NCBI GenBank assembly: GCA_038087875.1
Contig: JAXLNO010001765.1
Span: 124,001-188,000 of the forward strand
From: Malacoraja senta
Taxonomy: Eukaryota
DNA length: 64,000 nucleotides
Direction: 5' to 3'
In this document: in pieces, positions 527-43,920 of the stretch
How positions within the stretch are numbered: the stretch's first letter is position 1
How the letters are laid out: every line of letters begins with the position of its first letter
The notes under the pieces: model-generated
Told to the model about the DNA's origin: nothing
What the model saw: the letters and a program-made list of their open reading frames with translations, nothing else
The model's database searches: none
Position numbers and translations under genes: made by a program

Positions 527-940
527 GTTGTGACCAAAGATTATAGAGGAGCAAGATAGACCACTCCTCCGAAATCCAATGGGCTGACGTGTCGTACGTA
601 ACGTCACGGCCGCCATTTGTTTAAGCCAAACGCGACTTCCGGTATGCCTCCTGCTGTGCACTCGCTCTATCATCCTTGGTGTAATAAGTGTTGTAGGGAA
701 CAGTGTTTGATATAGCGCATCTATCACCTCACATATTTTAATTAATTTTATTGTAAATGTTTTCCCCCTGTTCCCCCATTTCCCTCCCATCTTTTCTCCC
801 CAGCCGCCACCTTTGCTTAGTTTCCCTTACATTGTATTGTGCAGCTTCCCTTGTATTGTTTTAACACACACTGTGCACAAAATTAACTTTAACTTATATA
901 TATATTTATATGAATGTGTGTTTCTGTGTGTAAGAGGCAA

Positions 941-1140
941 GTTAAGGGCCTGTCCCCACCAGCATGCGATTGCATGCGTGTAGCGCGACCAAATGTGGTC
1001 GCTTGAAAAATCTTGCACTGTCCGAACATCCCGCGCGACAACGGCCTGTCGGCCTGCAGGCACATTGAGGGCGTACGCAGCGTCTTGATATCGTACGCGG
1101 CATCTTGACGGCGTATGCCTAACGCGTGGCGTTGTGTGAG
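941..1140. mobile_element. Partial Harbinger-like MITE nested in the P-like element
   Basis: Begins TTAAGGGCCTGTCCCCAC, similar to the AAGGGCCTGTCCCAC termini at 13786 and 31912; no right end seen. Confidence 0.45.
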
Positions 1141-1240
1141 AGTTGTTTTTTAAATGTGCTATATAAATAAAAGTGACTTGACTTGACTTGACATATTTCT
1201 CTAGTTTTTCTTCAGATTTCCTCTAATTTCTTCAGCAACC

Positions 1241-1520
1241 NNNNNNNNNNNNNNNNNNNNNNNNNNNNNNNNNNNNNNNNNNNNNNNNNNNNNNNNNNNN
1301 NNNNNNNNNNNNNNNNNNNNNNNNNNNNNNNNNNNNNNNNNNNNNNNNNNNNNNNNNNNNNNNNNNNNNNNNNNNNNNNNNNNNNNNNNNNNNNNNNNNN
1401 NNNNNNNNNNNNNNNNNNNNNNNNNNNNNNNNNNNNNNNNNNNNNNNNNNNNNNNNNNNNNNNNNNNNNNNNNNNNNNNNNNNNNNNNNNNNNNNNNNNN
1501 NNNNNNNNNNNNNNNNNNNA
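1241..1520. other. Assembly gap (280 N)
   Basis: Run of N. Confidence 1.
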
Positions 1521-2029
1521 TAATACATCCATGAACACAATGTCAAAATATGTTTCCATTCTTTCATTCTATATTAGCGTAACACAATGTAGTGCATACA
1601 TACCTACATATTTAAATTCAGTCGATAAGTTGGTCAAATAATATGGGGATCTTCTTGCTTTTTTTTGAGACATGGATTTTTTAAATATGAATGTCTCATA
1701 ACGACACATTTGTGGGTCAGCCCTATATTGCACTAACCACAATTTCAAATAACTCTAAATTGAACTATAAACAATGAAAACACTCTTTATTTCCGTCATT
1801 TACGGTAATATTTACATAATTCACATCATTTTGTGCACGACTTATACAGGGGGTTGCAGTGTTTTGAAAGTGATGTAAAATTCAACATATTTCAGACAAT
1901 GATAGCCCCACCCCTTGCTTACCCCAAAGAACAAAATTTCCAACTTATATACAATAATAAATAAATCGTCATTTGCACAATTTTGTGTGGGTAACGGGAG
2001 GTTCTCATTCTTCCTCTTGAGTTGGGAAA

Positions 2030-3213
2030 ACAGACGTTTCGGCGTGTTCGGGATATCAAATAGCATTGGAACTGCATTGCAATTTAGCCTGTCATTGGTC
2101 TGCCTGTTGGAAAACTAGTCAAGTTCAGTGTTCAGAACAAAAACGGCAGGTGGTTGACAAGTACACCAGAGTTTGGTGGTGGAGATCTTGTCGACGAGTA
2201 TTCTGGACCCGCTGTCGACATCTGAAATTACAGAAAATCTCATATTGGATTAACTAAGAAGGAAAAAATGTAGTTATAACTACATATCTGCAGAACGGAT
2301 GATATATCATTTAAGTGCAATTGTTCAGTTGTGGGGAGAGACCTGTATATTGAAGATGCATTTTGCCACTAATGTAGTAGAGATTATTTAAAACTTCTAA
2401 TGTAGACTATTTAAAGTATTTTCTTTCTATCCTCTTTTGGACCTAAGACACTAGCAGGACTACCAACTCTCAGGCAGAGACAGACAGAGAGAGAGGGGAG
2501 GAAGAGAGAGAAAGGCAGATGGGGCAAAGACCGAGATAGAGAGAGACAGGGAGAGGAGAGAGAGAGAGAAGGGGCAGAGAGAGACGGGGAGAGAGGGAGA
2601 GAGAGATGGAGGGGGCAGAGAGAGAAGGGGAGAGAGAGGAACGATGGAACGTTATAACGCACAGCCGTCCCATTTTGACCGCCGCCGAACCCCGCACCGC
2701 ACCATTGCACCCTTCTTCACGGCGGCCCAGCGATGTCTCGGCTCTGACAATTCGAGGGATCTAATCGGTAACTACACTAAGAGCAGCCCTGGGTCGCTGC
2801 GCTCCCCGACTCGAATCTGAGGTTAAAATCTTGTGATGGGCCTGATGTGTCTCTCTCCCCATCTCTCTCTGCCCCTTCTCTCTCTCTCTCCCTCTCTCCC
2901 TACGGACCATATTTTGGAGACTCCTGCCGTACAGAAACAAAAGAAAAATGTACAGAAGAACAAAAATTGCTGACTTTATTATTGTGGTGAGTTTAGATCT
3001 ATTAAAAAAAATCTAGTATCTTTCTAATGTACCAACAACCCTAGTTTTCCAATGAGTGTCAATAGGGGAACAAAAAATAACATTTTCAGGACAAAATGAT
3101 GTCGACAGAAAACAATAATATTTCCTCACCTTTCTTTGTTGTTGGGGAACCTGAAGAAAGACAGGTTGAGTTGTCAACATCGGTGATTAGAGCAATTTAG
3201 ATGTGGACGCCAT
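2030..3213 (-). pseudogene. Degenerate two-exon THAP zinc-finger gene (N-terminus of a transposase)
   Basis: Exon 1 (3213-3130): ATG, then frameshifted LNCSNHRC*QLNLSFFRFPNNKER, ending AG|GTGAGG. Exon 2 from 2221 after TTTCTGTAATTTCAG: CRQRVQNTRRQDLHHQTLVYLSTTCRFCSEH, frameshift, ELD*FSNRQTNDRLNCNAVPMLFDIPNTP. Shows the THAP FP..W(mutated), CSxH(F) and AVP motifs. Confidence 0.8.
2468..2640. repeat. GA-rich low-complexity/microsatellite tract
   Basis: (GA)n-like purine tract; a partial inverted CT-rich copy lies at about 2850-2900. Confidence 0.9.
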
Positions 3214-3330
3214 GACAGTATGCGGGCAGCCCTATAAAATGCCCTATAAAATGGCGTCGACAATCACACACGTCATACAACGCGTTTTTCGCTGAGTGGC
3301 GCATCTTGCTCTATAATCTTTGGTTGTGAC

Positions 3331-3853
3331 TGGGCCCTGTTGCCACGAGCGTGGCAGCACCGGATAAAGTGGCCTTTCTTTTTACAGTAGTGGCAAGTTT
3401 TGTCATAAGTGGGGCATTGCTCACAGAATTTCGGGTGTGAGCCACAGCAGTTACGACAGTTATGGAGCAGTCCCTGGGTGGGCAGCGTCTATGAAAATTC
3501 CGAATTCCACTTCGAAGATGTGCCTACGTTCGGCAAATTCGCTGTCGAACATTAAAGGATCTGGTTTACGAAAAGACTCTGCCATAATAAGCGAGCGATG
3601 GTTCTTGTAAAAAAACAACTAAAATTGTTACATGGCTCAATCCCACTTCTGACACCATGTTTATGATTAATCCACACTAATACATATGGTAAAAGATCAG
3701 TCTTTATTCCATAAGTATACAGGAACATTTAAACTGCCAGCCATTCTCATTCAGCTCAGCGTGGCTTGTGTGAGAGAGCGAGCGAGAGCAAGCTGACCTT
3801 GCTAATGTAAAGCTGTGTAGTACCGTAATACCATGTAAACGGTGGCATGGACA
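3331..3853 (-). mobile_element. Old Gypsy element: 5' LTR, tRNA-Leu PBS and internally deleted gag
   Basis: LTR 3853-3658 reads TGT...ACA with an AATAAA. PBS TGGTGTCAGAAGTGGGAT (3657-3640) is complementary to the vertebrate tRNA-Leu(CAA) 3' end. Gag start MAESFRKPDPLMFD and zinc-knuckle CPTYDKTCHYCKKKGHFIRCC. Confidence 0.85.
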
Positions 3854-5435: not shown

Positions 5436-6461
5436 GGTAACCATGATCTCCAGTGAGCAAGTGTTCGAAGAAGCTCACAAACATAGATCTGGAGTTCCTA
5501 CTCTTTTTTCCCCCTCTCTTCCTTCATCCGGTCCACCTACTGCTGAAACACCAGTAACTAATATGTTCATCAGACACGGACTGCCCCGAACCACCACCTA
5601 CATGAAAGTTTCAAAATCTCGGCGCTTTCTCTCAGCATTCAGTGCACTAATGTAAAAAGAAAATGTATCTACGGTATTGGACACAGATGTTAAACACAAA
5701 TTGCCTGCGGTATCAGTGAAACCTTCTGTATATATACTTTTGTAAATAGTTTTGAATATTCCCTGTTTTTAATGACTTTTTAAGAAAATAGCTATTATTA
5801 TTGAATTTCAGTGCATCAATTTGTTTTTTGAAATAAAGTTTTGAGATATTTAACGAACTAGGCTTTGGCAGCTGTTATTTTTCTGCTCTGACCTTAACCG
5901 CTGCTCTCTGCATGTTGTTTATTTGTTGTTCTGAGTTTGATTCCATGGTATGGATTAGGTATTGGGAGTAGAGCCATCTCTTACACATCACAGATCCAAG
6001 CACAAGTCTGATTTCCCAATAAGCTGTTCACGCACTATTTATGGTAACTCCCTTCAATAACATTATCGAGATAGACACAAAGTGCTGGAGTTACTCAATG
6101 GGCCGGGCAACATATCTGGAGAAAAACGATGGGTAATTTTATTGTTTTGTTTAGAGATACAGCATGGAAACCGGCACCTTCAGCCCACCGAGTCCATGCC
6201 GATCAGCGATCCCCGCACACTAACGCTATCCTACACACACTTACTTACTTAGACTTAGTTCCTCCCACACTGTTGAGTGCATTGGGCAGCAAGCTTTGGC
6301 CATTCTGTTCGGTTATGTGCGACGTCTTCCACCCTCGATAGGTTAGCGTCCCGGGCTTCCAAATCCTACCAGAATGTTCACCTCATGTGAGTTTTGGTCG
6401 GCGTCATTTCCTTCTTCCGTCAGCTTGCCATGTCATTACTATCATTACTCACGTCGCAGCG

Positions 6462-7270
6462 GCCTCTGCAGTCCGTCTGTCTTTTTTTTTTTTCTTTTTC
6501 GTTTGAGTTTTGTTTATAGTGTTTTTTTAACTGGGTATGTGTGGGGGGGCGGGGGGTGGGGAAACTTTTAAAATCTTTTCCCTGCACGGGAGACCCGACC
6601 TTTCTCTGTCGGGTCTCCATTGTCGTTGGGGCCTAGCACCGTGGAGCGGCCTCCAACCGGAACGATCTGGGGCTCCAGTCGCGGAGCCTGCGGACTACTC
6701 ACCATCGTGGAGCTGGCCGAGTTCGGAACGGGAGGAGCTGTGGTGGCGCGCTGCTGCTAGCCGACCCCGGAGAATTGGAGGCTTCAGCCGCAGGTCTGGT
6801 GGACGGTAACATCGGGAGCTCGCGGGTCCATGGTGGGAGACCGCTTTTCGGGGGTCCCGCAACGGCAGCTACTCCCGCCCGAGTTGCGGGGTTGAGGATG
6901 ACCTGGAGCGGGGTCTGACATCGCCCGGCGCGGCATTGGTGGCCGTGGGACTTGCTGGCGCTACCGGGGGCTACAACATCAAGACCCGGAGCGTGGCCTT
7001 GCATCGCCCGGCGCGGCTTTAATGGCCGCGGGACATATCTACCATCGCCCGCCGGGGGCTTTGACTTTGACATCGGGAGGAGAATGTGGAGTGCAGGGGA
7101 GAGATAAGACTTTGCCTTCCATCACAGTGAGGAGGAGATTCACTGTGATGGATGTTTGTGTAAATTGTGTTGTGTCTTGGTTCTTTTTACTTGTTTGTAT
7201 GACTGCAGAAACCAAATTTCGTTTGAACTTAGGTTCAAATGACAACAAATAAATTGTATTGTATTGTATT
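6462..7270 (+). mobile_element. Non-autonomous GC-rich repeat with LINE-type 3' tail
   Basis: Ends CAAATGACAACAAATAAA followed by (TTGTA)n, a LINE-like 3' end; no coding capacity recognised. Confidence 0.5.
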
Positions 7271-7625
7271 CTTTCTTAGGTGCACGTTCTGCTGACATTC
7301 TGAGTACATGTCCTGCAAATTTCATCCTGCGTCCCTCCATGTCCTGGATGAGAGGCTTTGTTGCAGTTTCCCGGTAGATCTCCTCGTTTGTGATGTGGTC
7401 TCTGTAGCTAGTCTTCAGGATCCTCGTCAAGCAGCGTTGTTGGGATGCATCCAATTTCTTTTTCATCTTCACATTGATTTTCCATGTATCAGTGGCACAG
7501 AGGGCTGTTGGGAAGACTACGGACTGGAAGAGTTTGACTTTTAGTATCTTGGATATCCCACCACTAGACCATATTGGCTGCATTTGTCTGAAGATTGATG
7601 CAGCTTTACCAATTCCGGGTAATTT
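7271..7625 (-). mobile_element. RTE-clade LINE, RT C-terminal fragment
   Basis: GKAASIFRQMQPIW...KVKLFQSVVFPTALCATDTW...QQRCLTRILKTSYRDHITNEEI...KFAGHVLRM in ORF 7140-7706. Confidence 0.8.
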
Positions 7626-8369
7626 ATAATTTTTACCAAAGCAAATTAAAACCCTAGCGTCTTTGGCATGTTGGGGGAAACCGGAATACCTGGAGAAATC
7701 CCACAAAGGTCACGGGGAGAACGTAAAACTCCATACAGACAGCACTCATAGTGTGGATCGAACCTGGGTCTCTGGCGCTGTAAGGCAGCAGCTCTAACGT
7801 GGGCGACGTTTCGGTTCGGGACTCTCCTTCAGACTGAAAATAGAGGGGAGGGAATTGGAGGTAAGAATAGAATAGAAACATAGAAAATAGGTGCAGGAGT
7901 AGGCCATTCGACCCTTTGAGCCAGCACCGCCATTTAATATGATCATGGCTGATCATCCAGAATCAGTACCCTGTTCCTGATTTGTCCCCATATCCCTTGA
8001 TTCCATTAGCCCTAAGAGCTAAATCTAACTCTCTTAAACACACGGACCAATATAGAACAAATCAGGGCCAGCAACAGATGACCAAGGAAGGTTGGAGCCC
8101 ATAATGGCCCATTGTTGGCTGGGGAAGAGGTTTTAACGAAGGGATACAATTAACATTATTACCGACCCAAAACATTCCCTATCCATGTTCTCCAGAGATA
8201 CTGTCCCACTCAGATATTTTGTGTAGACCAGCATCTGCAATGGAGCAGTCTGAAGGGTCTCGACCCGAAACATCACCCATTCCTTCTATCCAGAGATGCT
8301 GTCTGACCTACTGCTGATGCTGATGTCCAGCATCAGCAGTTCTTTGTTTTCATATTCTCCCTTCTACCC

Positions 8370-8600
8370 ATTCCTCCCCCACTCCCAATTCCTGCGTCTA
8401 CACCGCATCTGCACCCAGGATGAGGTGTTCCAGACCAGGGCATCGGAGAAGTCCTCATTCTTTAGGGAACGGGGGTTCCCCTCTTCGATTATAGATGAGG
8501 CTCTCACCAGGGTCTCCTCTATATCCCGCAGCTCTGCTCTCACTCCCATCCCCTACTCGTAACAAGGACAGAGTCCCACTTGTCCTCACCTTCCACCCTA
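8370..8600 (+). mobile_element. Penelope RT fragment
   Basis: SQFLRLHRICTQDEVFQTRASE, homologous to the 17150 copy. Confidence 0.85.
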
Positions 8601-9165
8601 CCAGCCGTCGCATCTGCTTTCACCTCCTTTCCCCATTTTGTACCAACCATATAACCATATAACCATAACAGCACGGAAACAGGCCATCTCGGCCCTTCAA
8701 GTCCGTGCCGAACATTTGATACAGTAACATTTAACCGACGTAGGAAGGAACTACAGATGCTAGTTTACACTGAAGATAGACACAAACAACAGCGGGTTAG
8801 ACAACATCTCTGGAGAAAAAGAATATGTGACATTTTGGTTCCAGACTCTTCTTCGGACTCAAGTCTGTTGCCATCTGTAAAACATCTGTCATGTTTCAAT
8901 GGTAGACTTCCAAAATATATTGGACATTTGGGCACAATTTCAGAAAGTGTGGTGCGTAGGTCCCGAAATGAAAGCGAGGAGCCAGGTATTTCGGGAGGCA
9001 CCTCTATTTATGTCCTTCCAGATGGTAGGGAAGTCCACGAGAGAAAGATGGCACCCAAACCCTTGCCTTTAAACGTCTGGTTAAGGGCCGCCTCTGGACT
9101 GAACCATTCCCGTGCCGAGGGGTTTGACAGTTAGGATGGTCCGACCCTTGGGAGCCGCCACAAAA

Positions 9166-9462
9166 GTTTAGATTAGAGATACAGTGTAGAAACAGGCCCT
9201 TCAGCCCACTGAGTCCGTGCCGACCAGTGATTACCCGCAGACTAATACTATCCCACACACTAGGGACAATTTACTATTTTATCAAAGCCAATTAAGCTAC
9301 AAACTTGTACATCTTTGGACAGTGGGATGAAACCAGAGCCCCCAGAGAAAACCCACTCAGTCACGGGCCGTACGTACAAACTCCGTACCAACAGGACCCA
9401 TAGTCAGAATCGAACCTGGGTCTCTAGCGCTGTGAGGTAGCAACTGTACCGCTGTGCCGCCC
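9166..9462 (-). mobile_element. tRNA-derived V-SINE (HE1-like), full length
   Basis: tRNA-like head GGCGGCACAGCGGTACAG...GGTTCGATTC, central GTTTGTACG core, CR1-like tail GGGCCTGTTTCTACACTGTATCTCTAATCTAAAC. Confidence 0.8.
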
Positions 9463-10289
9463 CTGAATGTATCCAACTGTAAATCCTTGGTGTTGCACCT
9501 GTTACATAGTTCTCTTGAATGAGCTTTCCAATTACACAAAGTGGCATTCTCTGTTACAGGATTCTCAGTCGGATTTGCATTAGAGTGCAAGGATTTCTGG
9601 CTGTCCATTGCTATGAATCCAGCTGTTTTCCTTGCTGGTTCTGGTTAGACAGATGTTTCCCATAAATAGTCTAATGATCCAAATGAATTGGAGAAGTGAG
9701 ATTCACAACAAGTCCAGAAATCAGTTTAGCATTTTGATTAATATGTTATTTTAAACATGATTAGTCGTGGAATGTGCAACTTCTCATGTATGGTCTGTAA
9801 ACTCTTCCTATATTGTGATCTAATTATGCTTCTAAACTGCTAGCCAAACAGTGTTTAATCCTGATGAACACTGAAATGATCAAAAGTGGCTGTGCAAAAC
9901 GTCGCAAAAGTCATGCTACATACCTTTTAGTTTTGCTTTTAGAGATACAGCGTGGAAATGGGCCCTTCGGCCCACCGAGTCCACGCCGACCAGCGATCAC
10001 CTGTACACTAGTACTATCCTACACACTAGGGCCAATTTACAGAAGCCAATAATCTGCACATCTTTGGATGCCCATTCTAATGACATTGCCTGCCCATTCC
10101 TTCCACAGATGCTGCCTAACCTGCTGAGTTACTCCAGCACTTTGTGTTTTGCTCCAGATTCCAACATCAACATTCCCTGTGTTCCCATTTTATTTTCACT
10201 TGGTTCTCAGAATAAAAATTTTAAACTTTGGAGATTACTCCACCTTATTTTCTCTTACATCTTCAAGCTTTGCAAAACCAAATAATTAG

Positions 10290-10520
10290 TTTAGTTGAGT
10301 GATACAGCGTGGAAACAGGTCCTTGGGCCCACCGAGTCCGCACCAACCAATGATCATCCTACACACTACGGACAATGTACAGAAGCCAATTAACCTACAA
10401 ACCTCCATGTCTTTGGGATGTGGGAGGAAACCGGAGCACCCGGAGAAAACCCACGCGGTCACGGGGAGAACATACAAACTCCGTAGAGACAGCACCCGTA
10501 GTCAGGATCGAACCAGGGTC
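10290..10520 (-). mobile_element. V-SINE (HE1-like), 5' truncated
   Basis: Same core and tail as the 9166 copy. Confidence 0.75.
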
Positions 10521-10552
10521 TGTTGCACCAAAGGTTCTTAATGATAGTCACA

Positions 10553-10840
10553 AAGTGTTGGAGTAACTCAGCGGGACAGGCAGCATCTCTGGAGAACATG
10601 GATAGGTGACGTTTCACAGAGTGCTGGAGTAACTCAGCGGGTCAGGCAGTATCTCTGGAGAACATGGATAGGTGACGTTTCACAGAGTGCTGGAGTAACT
10701 AAGCGGGTCAGGCAGCATCTCTGGAGAACATGGATAGGTGACGTTTCACAGAGTGCTCGAGTAACTCAGTGGGACAGGTAGCATCTCTGGAGAACATGGA
10801 TAGGTGACGTTTCGGATCAGGACCCTTCTTCGGACTGATT
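10553..10840 (-). repeat. Tandem array of four ~66-bp Penelope pLTR-derived units
   Basis: Unit GTGCTGGAGTAACTCAGCGGGTCAGGCAGCATCTCTGGAGAACATGGATAGGTGACGTTTCACAGA repeated four times; the last unit continues into a hammerhead-like stem. Confidence 0.9.
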
Positions 10841-11699
10841 GTGGGTGGGAGGGGGTGGATTGGAAGCAAGAAAGGACCAGGACAAATCAGGACCGGCAAC
10901 AGATTACCTCAGGCAAGGACAGTACAGAAACATAGAAAATAGGTGCAGGAGTAGGCCATATGGCCCTTTGAACCACCACCGCCATTCAATATGATCATGG
11001 CTGATCATCCAGAATCAGTACCCCGTTCCTGCTTTCTCCCCATATCCCTTCATTCTGTTAGCTCTTAGAGCTATATCTAACTGAAAGGCTGATTATCTGC
11101 TAGGGATGATGTGCATCTGAGGAATATATTGTGAACTGTGGAACTAGTTAACTGACTTTTAGTGCAAGAAGGGGGAGGGTGGAAGGGGGGGGGGGAGGAG
11201 AGGAGGAAGGGGAGCTTATGTAGAAGTTACCTTAACTCAGATAATCCAAAATTTACATCACTGGGTAGTGAGTTGTTCCTCCATGTTGTGTACAGCCTCA
11301 ATCTGGCAAAGGAGGAGGCCCGGGACACATTTCTTAAAGGCACACACATGCCATAGGTAGAACAATGGAAGATAGAATATATTCCTCACCCGTGTGAGAT
11401 GAAGTACTTGGTGAGGGCTATTCAGGGTGGGACATGCGTAGGAAATGGTGGATTCCTAAGGAGTATTGAGGAATGGAGACTTTGGAGTACGAGGATCCTT
11501 GAAATTGGCAACATTTAAGGTGGTAAAGAAGGCATACAGGATATTTACCTTCAATATCTGTTATCTCCACTACTGATTTTCCAGCATCCTTGGTTCCAGA
11601 GCCTTTCTGGATTATCTGTTTTGCCGGACCAACAGTGAAGAGGTTTTTGGGTGTGGGCTATCCAGTCAGTGGAAAGGCTATACATGAATCCTAGAATAC

Positions 11700-11985
11700 A
11701 TACATCTTAGAATAAAGGGGAGGCCATTTAAGACTGAGGTGACAACAAACTTTTTCACCCAGAGAGTTGTGAATTTGTGGAATTCCCTGCCACAGAGGGC
11801 AGTGGAGGCCAAATCACTGGGTGGATTTAAGAGAGTTAGATAGAGCTCTAGGGGCTAGTGGAGTCAAGGGATATGGGGAGAAGGCAGGCACGGGTTATTG
11901 ATTGGGGACGATCAGTCATGATCACAATGAATGGCGGTGCTGGCTCGAAGGGCCGAATGGCCTCCTCCTGCACCTGTTGTCTATG
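11700..11985 (+). mobile_element. CR1 LINE 3' end fragment
   Basis: Same 3' UTR (GAATGGCGGTGCTGGCTCGAAGGGCCGAATGGCC...) as the long CR1 copies. Confidence 0.85.
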
Positions 11986-12184
11986 TTTCTATGATAACAA
12001 CTAAGCCACTCCTCTAGTAGGGAAACGCAAATGCAGCATCTATGGAGCGGAGGAAATAGGCAACGTTTCAGTCTGAAGAAGGGTTTGGGCCCGAAACGTT
12101 GCCTATTTCCTTCGCTCCATAGATGCTGCTGCACCCACTGAGTTTCTCCAGCATTGTTTACCTTCCATTTTCCAGCATCTGCAG

Positions 12185-12218
12185 CAAAGACACTAGAGGA
12201 TCCGCCATATAATCTTTG
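12185..12218. mobile_element. 34-bp P-like terminal remnant (candidate excision footprint) flanked by an 8-bp TSD
   Basis: ATCTGCAG (12177-12184) + CAAAGACACTAGAGGATCCGCCATATAATCTTTG + ATCTGCAG (12219-12226). The uninterrupted host repeat at about 13341-13365 has a single ATCTGCAG. Confidence 0.8.
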
Positions 12219-12436
12219 ATCTGCAGTTCCTTCTTCAACACTTTGTCCTTGAGTATCTTTGTTGTCCACAAAGGCGCTTCCGGCGCAAGGGGAGGGGATG
12301 GGACGGTTTAGGGCGGCGCACCGGCGCTGGCAACGTGGGACGGTGGGTGGAGGGCGTCCGGGTGGAGGGCGAAACGCCCAATGTTGCTTCCGGAGTGGGT
12401 TTGTGTTGTTGTTTGGTGTATTGAGGGTGGGATGGA

Positions 12437-12568
12437 NNNNNNNNNNNNNNNNNNNNNNNNNNNNNNNNNNNNNNNNNNNNNNNNNNNNNNNNNNNNNNNN
12501 NNNNNNNNNNNNNNNNNNNNNNNNNNNNNNNNNNNNNNNNNNNNNNNNNNNNNNNNNNNNNNNNNNNN
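12437..12568. other. Assembly gap (132 N)
   Basis: Run of N. Confidence 1.
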
Positions 12569-13245
12569 GAGTGGGTTTGTAGGTTAATTGGTTTCTGGTA
12601 AAGATTGTAAATTGTCCCCCTGTGTGTGTGTAGGATAATGTTAGTGTGCGGGGATCGCTAGTCAGCACAGACTCGGTGGGCTGAAGGGCCTGTTTCCGCG
12701 CTGTATCTCTAAACTAAACTAGTGTGTGAACGGGCGATCGCTGGGCAGCACAGTCTCGGTGGGCCGAAGGGCCTGTTTCTGTGCTGTATCTCTAAACTAA
12801 ACTGGACTAAACTGGTTGAAGAACATAATTCAAACATCAAGTTGTACACCTTGGATTTTTCCAGCATCTGCAGTTCTTTCTTAAACATGTACTTGTCCCT
12901 TGTACTTTTCCTGAGTGTATGGTGGGGGTAATATGGAGTGAGCTTTACCCAAAATCAAATGTGAGGTAAGAGTCGTTTAATTGTCATATGTATCAACAAT
13001 AGAACAACAAAATTCTGACTTGCTGCAGCTTCACCTGCATGTAACTGCAATAACACAGAGATAATATAAAACAACCAATATAACAATAAATTAATAACTG
13101 TAATACTGGACTATCATAATAGTGCAAAAAACTAAATTCATAGTACATTCAAAGACAGTCCGTAGATGATCATAGATGCTGAAGTTAGTTTTGTGTGGTG
13201 TTGAAGAGCCTGATGTTTGCTGAGAAGAGGCTATTCTTGAATCTG

Positions 13246-13371
13246 AAGAAGGGTTTCGGCCCGAAACGTTACCTATTTCCTTCGCTCCATAGATGCTGCT
13301 GCACCCACTGAGTTTCTCCAGCATTTTTGTGTACCTTCGATTTTCCAGCATCTGCAGTTCCTTCTTTAACA
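13246..13371 (+). mobile_element. Short Penelope pLTR-derived element with 15-bp TSD and hammerhead core
   Basis: CTATTCTTGAATCTG at 13231-13245 and 13372-13386 flanks AAGAAGGGTTTCGGCCCGAAACGTT...CAGTTCCTTCTTTAACA. Confidence 0.8.
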
Positions 13372-13434
13372 CTATTCTTGAATCTGGTTGTCATGGTTTT
13401 CAGGCTGCTGTACCTTTCCCTATATCTATACTTA

Positions 13435-13740
13435 GGGGCGGCAGGGTGGCGCAGCGGTAGAATTGCTGCCTTATAGCAACAGACACCAGGGTTCGATCCT
13501 GACTATGGGTGCGGTCCGCACGGAGTTTGTATGTTGGGTGAACGCATGGGTTTTCTCCGGGTGCTCCAGTTTCCTCCCACACTCCAAAGACATACAGGTT
13601 TGCAGGTTAATTGGTTTGTAAATTGTAATTTGTACCTAGTGTGTGTAGGATAGTGCCAATGTAAAGGGATCATTGGTCTTCGCAAACTTGGTAGGCCAAA
13701 AGGCCTGTTTCCATGCTGTATCTCTAAACTAAACTAAACT
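13435..13740 (+). mobile_element. V-SINE (HE1-like), full length
   Basis: A-box-like GTGGCGCAGCGG, B-box GGTTCGATCC, (TAAAC)n tail. Confidence 0.85.
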
Positions 13741-13785
13741 AATTCTGCCCTGAGAGTGTGTGCTTGGACAACGCAGACACAGCTT

Positions 13786-14100
13786 AAAGGCCCTGTCCCA
13801 CTGTACGAGCTAATTCAAGAGTTCTCCCGAGTTTCCCCTGATTCGAACTCGTAGAATTACGGTAATAGCTGCTCGTAGGTACTTGGGGTCTCGTGGACTT
13901 TTTTCAACATGTTGAAAAATCTTCATGAGTCTTCACGAGCTTACCGCGTTTCCCGAGTACCTGCCGTTAGCGTTACGAGCCGCTAGGAGACTTCCCGAGC
14001 TCCGACGTACCCGCTACGTACATTCTACGTGCTTACCACGAGTTTAATTTTTTTAACTCGGGAGAGCTCTTGAATTACCTCGTACAGTGGGACAGGCTTT
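13786..14100. mobile_element. Harbinger-like MITE
   Basis: TIRs AAGGCCCTGTCCCACTGTACGAG / CTCGTACAGTGGGACAGGCTTT; same family as 31912-32229. Confidence 0.75.
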
Positions 14101-14342
14101 GAATTTTCTTTTTAAAAGGCAGTACATTGAGGCAACTGGCAGATTTGGTGCCCCTCTGCTACAGCAACTTGGATTCAATCCTGATCTCGGGTACAACGTG
14201 TATCATTTTCTTGTTCTCCCGATGACACGTGGATCTCCACCAAATGCTCCGTTCCTCCTATATCTCAAAGACATGCGAGTTGGTTGGTTAATTGAATTTT
14301 GTAAATTGCCCAGTGTGTGATTGGATGACAGATGTTGTCTAT

Positions 14343-14653
14343 GTTTAGTTTAGTTTAGAGATACAGTGAGGAAACAGACCCTACAGCCCACCGGGCCTGC
14401 ACCGACCAGCGATCCCCGCATTTTAACGCTACCCTACACACACTAGGGGTAATTTTACCTTTTATACCAAGCCAATTAACGTACAAACCTGTACGTCTTT
14501 GGAGTGTGGGAGGAAACCGAAGATCTTGGAGAAAACCTACGCAGGTCACGGGGAGAACGTACAAACTCCATATAGAAAAGCACTTGTAGTCAGGATTGAA
14601 CCCAGATCTCTGGCACTGTAAAGCAGTAGCCTTACGACTATGACACCATGCCA
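14343..14653 (-). mobile_element. V-SINE (HE1-like), full length
   Basis: Reverse complement of the 13435 family. Confidence 0.85.
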
Positions 14654-16369
14654 TCCTTCAGCAAGGCCCCACATGGGTGGCTGGTCCATTAGGTTTGAAA
14701 ACATGGGATCCAGGGTGAGCTAGTCAATTGGACACAAAGTTGGCTTGGTGGTAGGAGTCAGAGAATGGTAGTGGAGGGTTGTTTTTTTTACATAGGAAGC
14801 CTGTGACTATTGGTATGCCTCAGGGACTGATGCTCTGATGTCATTCAGTCACACACAGTGCTCTCAGACTGATTAATGATTTCAATTTGCAGAAATGAAA
14901 GAGATGAAGGAAAGAGAGATAGAGCTGAGGGATGAGAGATGGAGAGATAAATAGATGGAGAGAGATAGGGAGATAGAGAGAGATATATATAGTGAGATGG
15001 AGAGCGATGATAGATAGAGAGAGGGAAACAGTGTGGACACAGGATGTCTGGGGATGGCCAGTTTATAAATGGACTACACTATGAAGGAAAATAGATCAAT
15101 GTTAAGAGTTCTCAAGCCAGATAAGCAAAACAAAGATGTGTTTTGTTATTCAGTCCATGGATGAGTGGCAACTTGAATTTCTTGATTTTCTTTTCAGAGT
15201 TCAGACCTTGGATTAGAGTCTATTGTGCAACAAATCAGCTGAGCCCCTGGACAGATTAATGGTTGCCTGTTCAACATTCTGTACAACTGTAACACGACAC
15301 CCCAACCCTAGTCCTCAGTACCATGGCTGAGGAAACATGGCATAACATATACTCTGTGTAGGAATGAACAGCAGATGCTAATTTAAACCGAAGATAGACA
15401 CAAAAAGCTAGAGAGACTCGGCGGCAATATTTCTGGAGAGAAGGAATGGGTGACGTTTTGGATTGAGGCGATTCTTCAGACATATATTCCCTTCACTACC
15501 CTATCAAACTATGATGCCATTTTCAGGGAACTATGTAATTGTACACCAAGGTACAGCTCCATTTACAATCCTGCAATAGATTTGGCCAGCCCTGATTTGA
15601 CTTCCCAAAATTCATCAAATCACACTTGTTTGAGTTAGATTTCAACTGGCATTCCTTCCCCCCCTCACCTCCCATCCCCTCACCTCCATACCTTTCCGGT
15701 TGATCAACATTATTTTGTAATCTTAGACAACAATTATCATTACCTAATATACTTATCAATTTTGTTGTCAACTCTGGCAAAGAAGAATCCAAAGATACTT
15801 TATGTACATTCAAGAGTCAATATTGTTTTATTGTCATACTAGACCAAGTGCAGATTGGGTCTGCTCCCCCAACGAAATATTCCAGCACTCACCCGTTTCC
15901 CCCAACGCAACCCGTTTGGCTTAAAAAACAACTTTAATCATGAATAACCCGGTGAGGGGAGGGGAGGGGACGGGGGTGTGGCACTCGGCAGCTTGAGAGC
16001 CCATCGTGATTGGTGCACTGGAGGGGGGTGGGGGGGAGGGAGGGTTTGAGCACTGGAGTGCCCATCCCTCCTGGAGTGGCCCTGTCCTGCCTTGCGAGTG
16101 CATTGTGAAGTCACTCGGATTTTGTTTCCAAAATGGAAGAGTTTGAAGAAATCAGACTGTTTAAAAAAATGTTATGATTAATAACTTCGGAAATATAGGT
16201 GGAAATGTGACGGGAAGATGTTTATCGCCACCACGGGAAAAATGTGAGTACGACGTGTGAAAATGAGAAAGCTGTGGCCTAGCATTAGGAAGAAGATAGG
16301 AATTAACCAGATTGACACACACAGAGACACATCGTGGGCACAAACAAGCCAAAGACTTTTAGTTATATA

Positions 16370-16531
16370 GAGATGTCCTAGATAGAACAATGACATTCTT
16401 ACTTGCAGCAGCACAACAGAATATGTAAACATAGTACACTGTAAACAATATAAGAAACAAGAAATAAAAATATCTGGGTGTGTATATATATACACATACT
16501 CACAAATACACATATATACAGATCATATTCG

Positions 16532-16562
<31 letters not shown>

Positions 16563-16880
16563 TCATATGTACACACAAAAAAAAAACAATAATGGTGCAA
16601 CAATAACAATAATAGTCTATGTAGTTAAGAGCTTGTTTAAGGCTGTAGTGTTTAATAGCCTAAAGGCTGTAGGGTAGAAGTTATTCCTGAACCTGACGTT
16701 ACAGTTTTAAGGCTCCTGTACCTTCTACCCTATGGCAGGGGTGAAATAAGTGTGTGGCCAGGGTGGTGTGGGTCTCTGATGATGCTTGCTGCCTTTTTGA
16801 GCTTCCTTCGATGGTAGGAAGGTCAGAACCCGTGATGGACTGGGCAGTGTTCACAAGTTTTTACAGCCTTCTTCGCTCCT
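16370..16880 (-). mobile_element. Rex/Babar-type LINE 3' fragment with (TA)n(CA)n tract
   Basis: GATGATGCTTGCTGCCTTTTTGAG...GATGGACTGGGCAGTGTT is homologous to 1-162. Confidence 0.6.
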
Positions 16881-17050
16881 ATATTAAATGAATGAGGGTA
16901 ACTTGATAAAGAATAAATCCACTCAGAAAATAAAAGCTGTCATCTCTGTGAGGAGCTGCATGAGATGAGCAAGATCTTCAATGAGTATTTCTCCCCTGTT
17001 TTTACTGTGGAGAAAGATTTGAAGATGAGGGAGCTTGCAACAGGAAATGC

Positions 17051-18565
17051 CCACCCCCTATCAGTCTGAAGAAGGGTTTCGGCCCGAAACGTTACCTATT
17101 TCCTTCGCTCCATAGATGCTGCTGCACCCGCTGAGTTTCTCCAGCATTTTTGTGTTCCTCCCATTTCCTCCAAATACAAGGCGTAGCTATGGGCACACGC
17201 ATGGGCCCCAGCTACGCCTGCCTCTTTGTCGGGTACGTAGAACAATCCCTGTTCAATGCGTACCAGGGCCCCATCCCCGACCTCTACCTCCGCTACATCG
17301 ATGATTGTTTTGGTGCCACATCCTGCACCCACACACAACTGACTGACTTCATCCGCTTCACCACCAACTTCCATCCGGCACTTAAATACACCTGGACCAT
17401 TTCCGACACTTCCCTACCATTCCTTGACCTCACTATCTCCATCGCAGGTGATAGACTCCTTACCGACATCCACTACAAACCTACCGACTCCCATGGCTAT
17501 CTGGACTACACTTCTTCCCACCCTGCTTCCTGTAAGGACTCCATCCCCCACTCCCAATTCCTCCGTCTACGCCGCATCTGCTCCCAGGATGAGGCGTTCC
17601 ACACCAGGGCATCTGAAATGTCCTCATTCTTCAGGGAACGGGGGTTCCCCTCCTCCACCATAGATGAGGCTCGCACCAGGGTCTCTGCCATACCCCGCAA
17701 CACTGCTCTCTCTCCCCATCCCCCCACTCACAACAAAGGCAGAGTCCCCCTAGTCCTCACCTTTCACCCCACCAGCCGTCACATACAACAAGTGATCCTC
17801 CGTCAGTTTCGCCACCTCCAACGTGACCCCACCACTCGCCACATCTTCCCATCTCCCCCTATGTCTGCCTTCCGCAAAGACCGCTCCCTCCGTAACTCCC
17901 TTGTCAATTCTTCCCTTCCCTCCCATACCACCCCCTCCCCTGGTACTTTCCCTTGCAACCGCAAGAGATGCAACACTTGTCCCTTCACCTCCCCCCTCCA
18001 CTCCATTCAAGGACCCAAGCAGTCGTTCCAGGTGCGACAGAGGTTCACCTGCATCTCCTCCAACCTCATCTATTGCATTCGCTGCTCTAGATGCCAGCTG
18101 ATCTACATCGGTGAGACCAAGCGGAGGCTTGGCGATCGTTTCGCCGAACACCTCCGGTCGGTCCGCAATAACCAACCTGAACTCCCGGTGGCTCAGCACT
18201 TCAACTCCCCCTCCCATTCCGTATCTGACCTCTCTGTCCTGGGTCTCCTCCATGGCCACAGCGAGCAACACCGTAAATTGGAGGAAATGCACCTCATATT
18301 CCGCTTGGGCAGTCTACACCCTGGTGGCCTGAACGTTGAATTCTCCCAATTCTGCTAGCCCTGGCTGTCCCCTCCCCTTCATCAGCCATCTGGTTGTCTC
18401 CTCCCCTCCCCCCACCCTCGGGCTCCTCCTCCTCCTTTTCCTTTTTTCCTTTCTTCTCCCCACCCCCTATCAGTCTGAAGAAGGGTTTCGGCCCGAAACG
18501 TTACCTATTTCCTTCGCTCCATAGATGCTGCTGCACCCGCTGAGTTTCTCCAGCATTTTTGTGTA
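17051..18565 (+). mobile_element. Penelope-like element, 5' truncated, flanked by direct pLTR repeats
   Basis: The ~100-bp repeat CCACCCCCTATCAGTCTGAAGAAGGG...CCAGCATTTTTGTGT occurs at 17051-17150 and 18461-18565. Confidence 0.95.
17150..18358 (+). CDS. Penelope RT (C-terminal half) plus GIY-YIG endonuclease, open 402-aa frame
   Basis: QIQGVAMGTRMGPSYA, YLRYIDD, FLDL, then CTCISSNLIYCIRC...IYIGETKRRLGDRFAEH (GIY-YIG). 5' truncated. Confidence 0.9.
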   Translation: MCSSHFLQIQGVAMGTRMGPSYACLFVGYVEQSLFNAYQGPIPDLYLRYIDDCFGATSCTHTQLTDFIRFTTNFHPALKYTWTISDTSLPFLDLTISIAGDRLLTDIHYKPTDSHGYLDYTSSHPASCKDSIPHSQFLRLRRICSQDEAFHTRASEMSSFFRERGFPSSTIDEARTRVSAIPRNTALSPHPPTHNKGRVPLVLTFHPTSRHIQQVILRQFRHLQRDPTTRHIFPSPPMSAFRKDRSLRNSLVNSSLPSHTTPSPGTFPCNRKRCNTCPFTSPLHSIQGPKQSFQVRQRFTCISSNLIYCIRCSRCQLIYIGETKRRLGDRFAEHLRSVRNNQPELPVAQHFNSPSHSVSDLSVLGLLHGHSEQHRKLEEMHLIFRLGSLHPGGLNVEFSQFC

Positions 18566-43100: not shown

Positions 43101-43920
43101 CAGGGCCGGCCTTAGGAGGTGCGGGGCCCAATTGGGAAAAAATTTCGTAGAAATATAAATAAATAATTATAAATGAGTCAGTGAGTAACATGACAATTCG
43201 GGGGAGAGTTCCTTTCACAGCGTGTGGGGTCTAGCCAGGGGTAAAGTTGCGAGGAGGGAAGGAGCGTTGAGAAGGAGTGGGTCGGGTTCATGCCAGTAAC
43301 ACTCACCGCTGCCGCGGCGCTCCGGGCGCGGAGCCAGCACATTGTGGCCGGGGAGGGAAGCAGCTCGCGTGGCTACGAGCGGCCTCCATCACCGGACAGC
43401 GGAACTGACTGCCATCTCAGCACCTTCTGCCGGCCCGCTCACCTCTGGCAGTGCTCTCCGTCTGAACAGTGAGGGGACCAGCTCAAGAGCAAAGATCATA
43501 GAGCGGAGTGGGTCAGCGGGTGATGGATAACACCACAGCGGGCGGTGGAGCTTACTCCTGTGTCAGCGCGAACAAGGGATCAATTGAGGTTACTCGCCCT
43601 GACATATGGAGTAAGCTCCACCGCCCGCTGTCCTGTTATCCATCGCCCGCTGACCCGCTCTTGAGTTGGATGATCCCCGGCCGACCCCCACCTTCTCAAA
43701 CCTCTTGCCCTCCCCGCAACTTTACCCCTGGTCAGACTACCCACACGCTGTGAAATGAACTCTCTCCCCCCCCCCAGCAGCGCTGTCCTTTTACAGCCGC
43801 TTCCCACTTTACAGACGCTTCCCATCAGCTGCTAGCAATGAGGGATAGACTTGGCTATCCCTCAGTACAACAACATCGTTCTTGATGTTGCTGTACTGAG
43901 GGATAACGAAGTCTATCTTT
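43101..43920. mobile_element. hAT-like element end with internal fold-back palindrome
   Basis: Starts CAGGGCCGGCCTTAG. Inverted arms at 43201-43286/43681-43770 and 43510-43557/43609-43666. No matching right end or TSD found. Confidence 0.6.

Follow-up and report, generated by a model that had tools for sequence, protein, structure and literature searches.

The stretch of DNA analysed here is a 64-kb window from Malacoraja senta (contig JAXLNO010001765.1; all positions without another locus name are those of the window), and its main feature is a cut-and-paste transposon copy spanning 535-3322 that carries the remnant of a THAP gene near its right end. The copy lies between two exact copies of an 8-bp target site duplication (TSD), GTTGTGAC, at 527-534 on the left and 3323-3330 on the right, with 8 being the only length at which the two flanks match. 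It opens with CAAAGATTATAGAG and is closed by the exact reverse complement of this sequence, giving a perfect terminal inverted repeat (TIR) of 14 bp; beyond these 14 bp there is a 3-bp indel, after which CAAGAT and CCACTC match again and extend the imperfect TIR to ~31-34 bp. The TIR distal to the THAP gene (535-568, plus strand) reads CAAAGATTATAGAGGAGCAAGATAGACCACTCCT and is near to the 34-bp perfect TIR of a longer copy from L. erinacea described below, and the TIR at the THAP end (3292-3322, minus strand), CAAAGATTATAGAG CAAGATGCGCCACTCAG, differs from the other end by a 3-bp deletion and ~5 substitutions. An earlier note on this DNA, made from the sequence alone, had described CAAAG...CTTTG termini, a TIR with 14 bp perfect and ~30 bp imperfect, and an exact 8-bp TSD, and all of these were seen at 527-3330. 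Within the 64-kb window there are two CAAAG...CTTTG pairs with an exact 8-bp flanking repeat, namely 535-3322 and a 34-bp remnant at 12185-12218, compared with a rough chance expectation of ~0.01 such pairs given that the two pentamers occur 85 and 102 times; no further copy of the element was found within the window.

The insertion interrupts an open reading frame (ORF) that runs on the minus strand. The upstream part of this host ORF (3324-3488) contains a CCHC zinc knuckle and reads ...CHYCKKKGHFIRCC...RGNRAQSQ, and its downstream part (333-533), SQQSLYAL..., is in phase with it over one TSD copy; the knuckle sits in the upstream flank (...CHYCKKKGHFIRCCHARGNRAQSQ) and SQQSLYAL... in the downstream flank. 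Both TSD copies stand in the same codon phase on the minus strand (G as codon position 3, then TCA, CAA, and C as position 1), and the host frame ...RGNRAQ SQ / QSLYAL therefore continues over a single TSD copy, a continuity read from the codon phase of the two flanks. The earlier note had held that the host frame rejoins over one TSD, which is borne out by codon phase, and that the host is a Gypsy element, which is not shown: the identification has no support past a weak match of the CCHC knuckle to zf-CCHC_2 (E=0.014, 15.6 bits, below the cut-off). No retroelement domains were recognised in the neighbouring minus-strand pieces, and the pol side would fall beyond the start of the window. The host flank is itself repeated in public contig runs. 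From the nesting we can derive an order of events, namely the host repeat, then the transposon and then a short interspersed element (SINE)-like insertion within it, so the claim that the family was mobile after its host had inserted holds for the order and falls short for the Gypsy identity. An empty-site joint for the insertion at 535-3322 was not present among the joints listed, which carries no weight as proof.

The THAP gene lies on the minus strand, close inside the right end. Exon 1 (3130-3213) begins with an ATG at 3213, 109 nt inside this end, and is followed by a GT-AG intron of 908 nt (2222-3129; donor gtgagg, acceptor ttttctgtaatttcag) and by exon 2 (CRQRVQ...CSEH / ELD.FSNRQTNDRLNCNAVPMLF...), which runs from 2221 to ~1996 (alignment to 1980) and is truncated by an internal deletion. 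The splice sites on this strand are AAAG/gtgagg at 3130/3129 and ttttctgtaatttcag/A at 2222/2221, and the spliced continuation keeps the phase, ...FFRFPNNKE-R-CRQRVQNTRRQDL...CRFCSEH, before passing to ELD.FSNRQTNDRLNCNAVPMLF. When X was placed at the two stops and the frameshift, the spliced reading matched the Pfam THAP profile PF05485 with 37.1 bits (cut-off 23.9; E=5.4e-9) over profile positions 6-87 of 87, and it also matched the solved THAP2 domain in the PDB (E=1e-4). The unspliced stop-to-stop pieces of the element gave no Pfam match, and the unspliced read-through at 3027-3263 reached THAP at E=1.2 only. A public Logan contig from run X3, which derives from a related organism, contains the exact joint 3130-2221 ('skips 908, ends CT..AC'), and this corresponds to GT..AG on the minus strand. 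In tblastn searches with skate THAP proteins, residues 16-53 fell at 3200-3087, residues 39-70 at 2223-2128 (75% identity) and residues 72-126 at 2126-1980; taken together with global alignment to the skate proteins P0004 and P0002, amino acids 1-126 are covered, the identity in exon 2 is 56-75% and the junction KER/CRQ is conserved.

The frame is heavily damaged. Exon 1 has a net deletion of 32 nt relative to the A. radiata copy, by which the first zinc-binding Cys is lost and the frame is shifted, as well as an in-frame TGA at 3176-3174; exon 2 has a frameshift after CSEH (~2127-2129), an in-frame TAG at 2117-2115 and two altered Trp codons (W to R and W to C). The total defect thus comes to the loss of the first Cys, two stops and two frameshifts. 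The THAP gene is a real but decayed two-exon remnant, and dead: the position given in the earlier note, about 110 bp inside one end, was right, and the intact gene was not there. Two motifs considered as zinc ligands were rejected. 'VFCRHHF' in the intron had been taken as a C-x2-H motif, and the GT-AG splice to 2221 instead puts CSEH and AVPMLF in register; CSNHRC had been taken as a C-x4-C pair, and in the alignment to P0004 and P0002 the first Cys proved to be deleted and the second Cys to be a substitution.

The internal structure of the copy can be read against L002, the L. erinacea locus mentioned above, in which positions 9952-17701 hold a bounded copy of 7.75 kb with a 34-bp perfect TIR and an exact TSD, CTTCAGAC; by blastn the two copies are collinear over their whole extent. 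An internal deletion breakpoint, placed by this collinearity and by tblastn, falls at 1987-1996, where ~2.96 kb of L002 (11281 to 14244) are missing. Set against the A. radiata locus L005, the loss at this place begins at the end of exon 2 and extends through the transposase catalytic region. The window copy still has its two termini and the promoter-proximal region and, of the gene, THAP exon 1, the intron and most of exon 2; these alignments identify it as a non-autonomous internal deletion derivative that lacks the whole catalytic part and is unable to transpose by itself. A GA/TC-rich inverted repeat within the intron (2472-2901) also occurs in L002 and therefore belongs to the family; a sub-threshold Rfam match of this hairpin to MIR408 was taken as an artefact. 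An independent SINE-like repeat with a (GACTT)n tail is nested at 955-1192 on the plus strand, as delimited by contig breakpoints. In each run, dozens of contigs end their match at 955, 1138 and 1192 and differ in their flanks, which marks the repeat as very abundant; it is absent from the matching place in L002 and had no match in Rfam. An assembly gap of 279 N, a length that is estimated, occupies 1241-1519. No reading frame spans this gap, which falls in the distal, non-coding part of the element, and the THAP coding sequence lies entirely to its right. Both sides of the gap are collinear, in the correct order and orientation, with the single TIR- and TSD-bounded copy in L002, and the adjoining stretches at 1193-1240 and 1520-1607 have no counterpart there. 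It is the TSD and the host ORF, both independent of the gap, on which the pairing of the two ends is based.

Since the catalytic part is missing, relatives of the window copy were sought. A phmmer search with the translated piece 1845-2114 (minus strand) against 1.84 billion representatives returned two L. erinacea gene models only, and word-indexed searches from those models added P0004 (Amblyraja radiata), P0005 (Octopus sinensis) and P0006/P0007 (Diadema). In P0004 and P0007 the THAP domain is directly followed by PF12017, the helix-turn-helix (HTH) domain Tnp_P_element. The closest coding relative retrieved is L005 of A. radiata, which has the same THAP exons, three THAP/HTH exons in all, and a nucleotide identity of 76-80% to window positions 3199-3017 and 2456-1998. 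Its terminus CAAAGATACGAGAG (CAAAGAT) stands 95 nt upstream of the ATG and its far side is closed by a CAAAGATGATAAAG terminus. Downstream in the same orientation L005 encodes PF12017 (23.2 bits), PF21787, the N-terminal part of a TNP-like RNase H (35.2 and 38.1 bits), and PF21788, a TNP-like GTP-binding insertion domain (29.6 bits), each reaching or exceeding its cut-off; PF21787 and PF21788 stand in shifted frames, and the motif DPPHLLKNTRSNLE is present. The L. erinacea locus L004 (15391-22636) has outer flanks identical to those of L005 (9906-15901) and represents the same insertion, which therefore predates the split between L. erinacea and A. radiata; both lie in a MORC-like gene model that takes in the THAP exons. 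Pfam found neither a BED finger nor a hAT dimerisation domain in frame pieces of the element, L005 or L002. The earlier note had proposed the P superfamily, had left hAT open, and had suggested looking for a non-P transposase in relatives; the L005/L004 relatives, diverged and decayed as they are, carry P-type domains (PF12017, PF21787 and PF21788) and no hAT domain, and the question appears settled for P, an assignment supported by this domain content.

Taken together, 535-3322 is very probably a copy of a DNA transposon of the P superfamily (P element/THAP9-type) that is non-autonomous, has suffered an internal deletion and has been inactivated by mutation. The parent element would have had ~34-bp TIRs starting with CAAAGAT and an intron-containing gene starting ~100 nt inside one end. 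A transposase of the family, acting in trans, would have bound the ends, excised the element and inserted it with an 8-bp stagger, presumably by the cleavage chemistry of its superfamily, and the target would have been the zinc-knuckle ORF of an older repeat, giving rise to the GTTGTGAC duplication.

Other members of the family allow the TSD to be followed beyond a single insertion. Across the window and five skate loci (L001-L005; 205 kb in all), each of six independent family insertions has a TSD of 8 bp and no other length fits, so the TSD length for which other copies were to be checked holds throughout; T occupies position 2 in 4/6 and A occupies position 7 in 6/6. Four of the six are TIR-only remnants, with lengths of 31, 33, 34 and 40 bp. 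The one in the window is the 34-bp remnant at 12185-12218, composed of CAAAGACACTAGAGGAT and CCGCCATATAATCTTTG between two copies of ATCTGCAG (12177-12226). The repeat around it has six further copies in the window, and these, with a single ATCTGCAG each, represent its empty site; the remnant may be a footprint of excision or else a micro-element of the family. For the 33-bp remnant in L002 the empty site is the window intron, which has a single GGTGCAAT compared with GGTACAAT, 33 bp and GGTGCAAT in L002; the window copy is in this way the empty site for L002 10491-10523. TIR-only micro-elements of 31-40 bp with 8-bp TSDs were observed inside family copies at L002 10491-10523, 10566-10601 and 17534-17564 and at L005 15735-15774.

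TIR-only remnants with 14-20 nt per end are not a known product of hairpin-forming hAT excision. A contig from run X3 joins 547 to 3309, which places 13 and 14 nt of the two ends back to back. In Drosophila, the cut made by the P transposase on one strand lies 17 nt within the TIR (PMC7776569), and given such a staggered cut TIR-only remnants are a possible product of P-type excision. The remnants are consistent with P-type excision footprints, which is not proof: against this, the 40-bp remnant retains ~20 nt per side, and mobile micro-elements are an alternative.

A number of points weigh against assigning the window copy to the P superfamily. It has no catalytic coding sequence of its own and its placement rests on relatives. 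Those relatives, L005/L004, belong to a diverged subfamily in which the TIR match is limited to the first 7-14 nt, the outer flanks of L005 show no TSD (GTTGGAAC vs GTAGCATT), the L005 transposase is frameshifted, and an intact autonomous copy with exactly the window TIR was not found. When the splice model was chosen a THAP domain was already expected; the independent contig joint and tblastn later backed the model. The N gap conceals part of the sequence. The hAT consensus is matched just as well by the CAAAG terminus and by the TSDs with their T2/A7 bias, and these features do not discriminate. Typical hAT elements have YARNG termini and 8-bp TSDs of the form nTnnnnAn, so a hAT-superfamily element whose transposase carries a THAP finger in place of the BED finger would account for the 8-bp TSD, for CAAAG as a YARNG terminus and for the TSDs GTTGTGAC, ATCTGCAG, CTTCAGAC and CTTTGGAT, which fit nTnnnnAn. 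It would not account for the coding relative, in which the TNP-like RNase H and GTP-binding insertion domains are specific to P transposases, nor for PF12017 directly after THAP in P0004 and P0007; the frame pieces tested hold no hAT domain, and remnants that keep 14-20 nt per end are unlike the known products of hairpin-forming hAT excision. We regard a hAT origin as extremely improbable, and as already largely refuted.

The linkage between the THAP gene and the TIRs could also be misleading, if a TIR-bounded element of some other superfamily had captured the THAP exons as a passenger and the THAP-P linkage in L005/L004 came from a different element or from a host gene. The lack of a matching TSD at L005/L004 and their location inside a MORC-like gene model would fit this, as would the skate gene models that join THAP exons to TRIM/B-box and other exons, and L002 shares the TIR yet has no catalytic domain. 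However, in the window and in L001, L002 and L005 alike, a CAAAGAT terminus stands ~95-110 nt away from the THAP ATG, with the orientation unchanged, and such a short and constant distance is the position expected of an element's own gene. The far side of L005 also ends in a CAAAGATGATAAAG terminus, and its distal coding trace KITKICELIDELYSVF resembles KLIKICEVIDALYQTLF at window positions 700-760, all of which makes capture of a passenger unlikely. A third explanation would have the single element as an assembly artefact, its two ends belonging to separate insertions or having been mis-joined over the gap. The 279-N gap, whose length is an estimate, and the absence from L002 of the sequence adjoining it on both sides leave room for this, but an exact 8-bp TSD and an in-phase host ORF on the outer flanks are not expected from two unrelated insertions, and the two pieces bear opposite, complementary family ends in the order and orientation of L002; we consider an artefact of this kind very improbable.

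The family to which this copy belongs is widespread. In public contig runs from three organisms, 5,700-13,400 short contigs per run match the element at a likeness of at least 90%, and together they cover every non-N bin of it; these are counts of contigs and hence not copy numbers. The contigs include internally deleted forms (570 to 3147; 589 to 2269), fold-back forms (568 to 3291, on opposite strands) and TIR-only forms, and we conclude that this is a high-copy family common to several skate-like organisms. The nearest public proteins are from the skates L. erinacea and A. radiata, which fits the cartilaginous fish that the earlier note had proposed as the source. Similarity also extends to more distant animals. 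The THAP domain of skate P0004 is 71% identical over 98 amino acids to P0007 from the sea urchin Diadema setosum, with similarity that extends further, across both the linker and the P-transposase HTH (42% over 218 amino acids), and 62% identical over 117 amino acids to P0005 from Octopus sinensis. The similarity to the urchin and octopus proteins may offer a lead for horizontal transfer between phyla. Put together, these observations could be joined into a picture that we offer tentatively, as possible but doubtful as a whole, in which a recently active and very abundant skate P family has left footprints pointing to a long stagger (at least 17 nt) conserved in vertebrates, has produced KP-like repressors and has moved horizontally among marine phyla. 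If this were true, the many 28-40-bp TIR-only remnants with 8-bp TSDs would be natural excision footprints, the frequent THAP-only deletion derivatives would have had a KP-like repressor role, and the 62-71% identity of the THAP/HTH region to sea-urchin and octopus proteins would reflect horizontal transfer.

P elements are the best-studied eukaryotic DNA transposons; in vertebrates, to our knowledge, what is known of them is chiefly the domesticated THAP9 and, in zebrafish, a few dozen Pdre copies. The published features of P comprise a 31-bp TIR, an 8-bp TSD, a THAP N-terminus and a 17-nt staggered cut (PMC7776569). Like Drosophila P, the skate family has TIRs of ~31-34 bp starting with CA, an 8-bp TSD, an intron-containing gene near one end and an N-terminal THAP domain, and its relatives carry an RNase H-like catalytic domain with a GTP-binding insertion domain. 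Internal deletions that retain the THAP-coding 5' part are frequent, as among P/KP-type derivatives, and remnants with 14-20 nt per end would be in line with a long staggered cut (PMC7776569). The skate family differs from Drosophila P in its unrelated TIR sequence, in its vertebrate host and in an intron that splits the THAP domain itself, and unlike KP the window copy has a broken THAP frame and hence no present KP-like repressor role.

Comparison with zebrafish Pdre and THAP9 shows a shared vertebrate P superfamily with the same order of THAP and P-transposase domains, and Pdre too has 8-bp TSDs and internally deleted copies (PMC10983969). Pdre2 has a 13-bp TIR and an 8-bp TSD (PMC10983969); its 13-bp TIRs, CATACCTGTCAAC, with distant 12-bp subterminal repeats, stand in contrast to the unrelated ~34-bp TIR found here. 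The zebrafish literature gives ~50 Pdre copies, compared with contigs that number in the thousands per run here, from at least three organisms, which again is not a copy number, and THAP9 is a single-copy domesticated gene without TIRs, unlike the skate family. With hAT elements such as Ac, hobo and Tol2 the family shares the 8-bp TSD, a YARNG-type terminus and the T2/A7 target bias; it differs from them in that its relatives have P-type domains instead of a BED finger or hAT dimerisation domain, and in a TIR longer than is usual for hAT. The P superfamily has already been listed in fish surveys (PMC6817897), in which the elephant shark was the sole cartilaginous fish surveyed and had few DNA transposons of any kind (PMC6817897, PMC5381603), and a literature search found nothing on mobile P families in skates. 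What we describe is a new P family, and not a new kind of element.

With its bounded, deleted, fold-back and TIR-only forms, a high-copy skate P family would let insertion and excision of the P type be studied on naturally occurring vertebrate material. The window copy is in itself ordinary and dead, and its value lies in being a clean, datable example, with an exact TSD, nested in a repeat and host to a later SINE-like insertion. The family is also of use for annotation, given that skate gene models merge THAP exons with TRIM, MORC-like and other genes. Three L. erinacea models (P0002, P0003 and P0008) have THAP exons fused to B-box/TRIM coiled-coil or other exons; as chimeric models (THAP with B-box/TRIM or a coiled coil) they were uninformative on the transposase, and such fused models may be either annotation chimeras or real exon capture. 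A 480-aa ORF in L002 was likewise rejected as a transposase, and is the reverse transcriptase of a nested long interspersed element (LINE). In P0001, P0002 and P0004 the THAP domain is followed by a conserved EHSY, which fits the HCF-1-binding pattern [DE]HxY; this region is deleted in the window copy.

Some smaller features remain to be described. An exact 14-nt family terminus, CAAAGATCATAGAG, occurs at 43490-43503 in the left arm of a ~190-bp palindromic element (~43478-43670) whose right arm is without it, and no partner end or TSD was recognised for this 14-mer. Inside the left end of the transposon, the motifs TGACGTGT (585-592) and CGCCATTT (611-618) on the plus strand recur at like offsets at the opposite end and in skate copies, and this conservation of offset across copies suggests that they may be putative transposase-binding or promoter motifs; a shuffle test of the subterminal alignment of the two element ends was not significant by itself. 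Between the TIR and the ATG at the right end, two tandem copies of ATTTTATAGGGC (3229-3252, minus strand) may be a candidate TATA-like or THAP-site-like motif. Lastly, an inverted near-copy of the terminus, CTCTATCATCCTTG (12/14), lies at 665-678, ~130 nt inside the left end, and a GCTCTA motif is found at a comparable depth inside the opposite end; the near-copy may be a putative subterminal inverted repeat, as in P elements.

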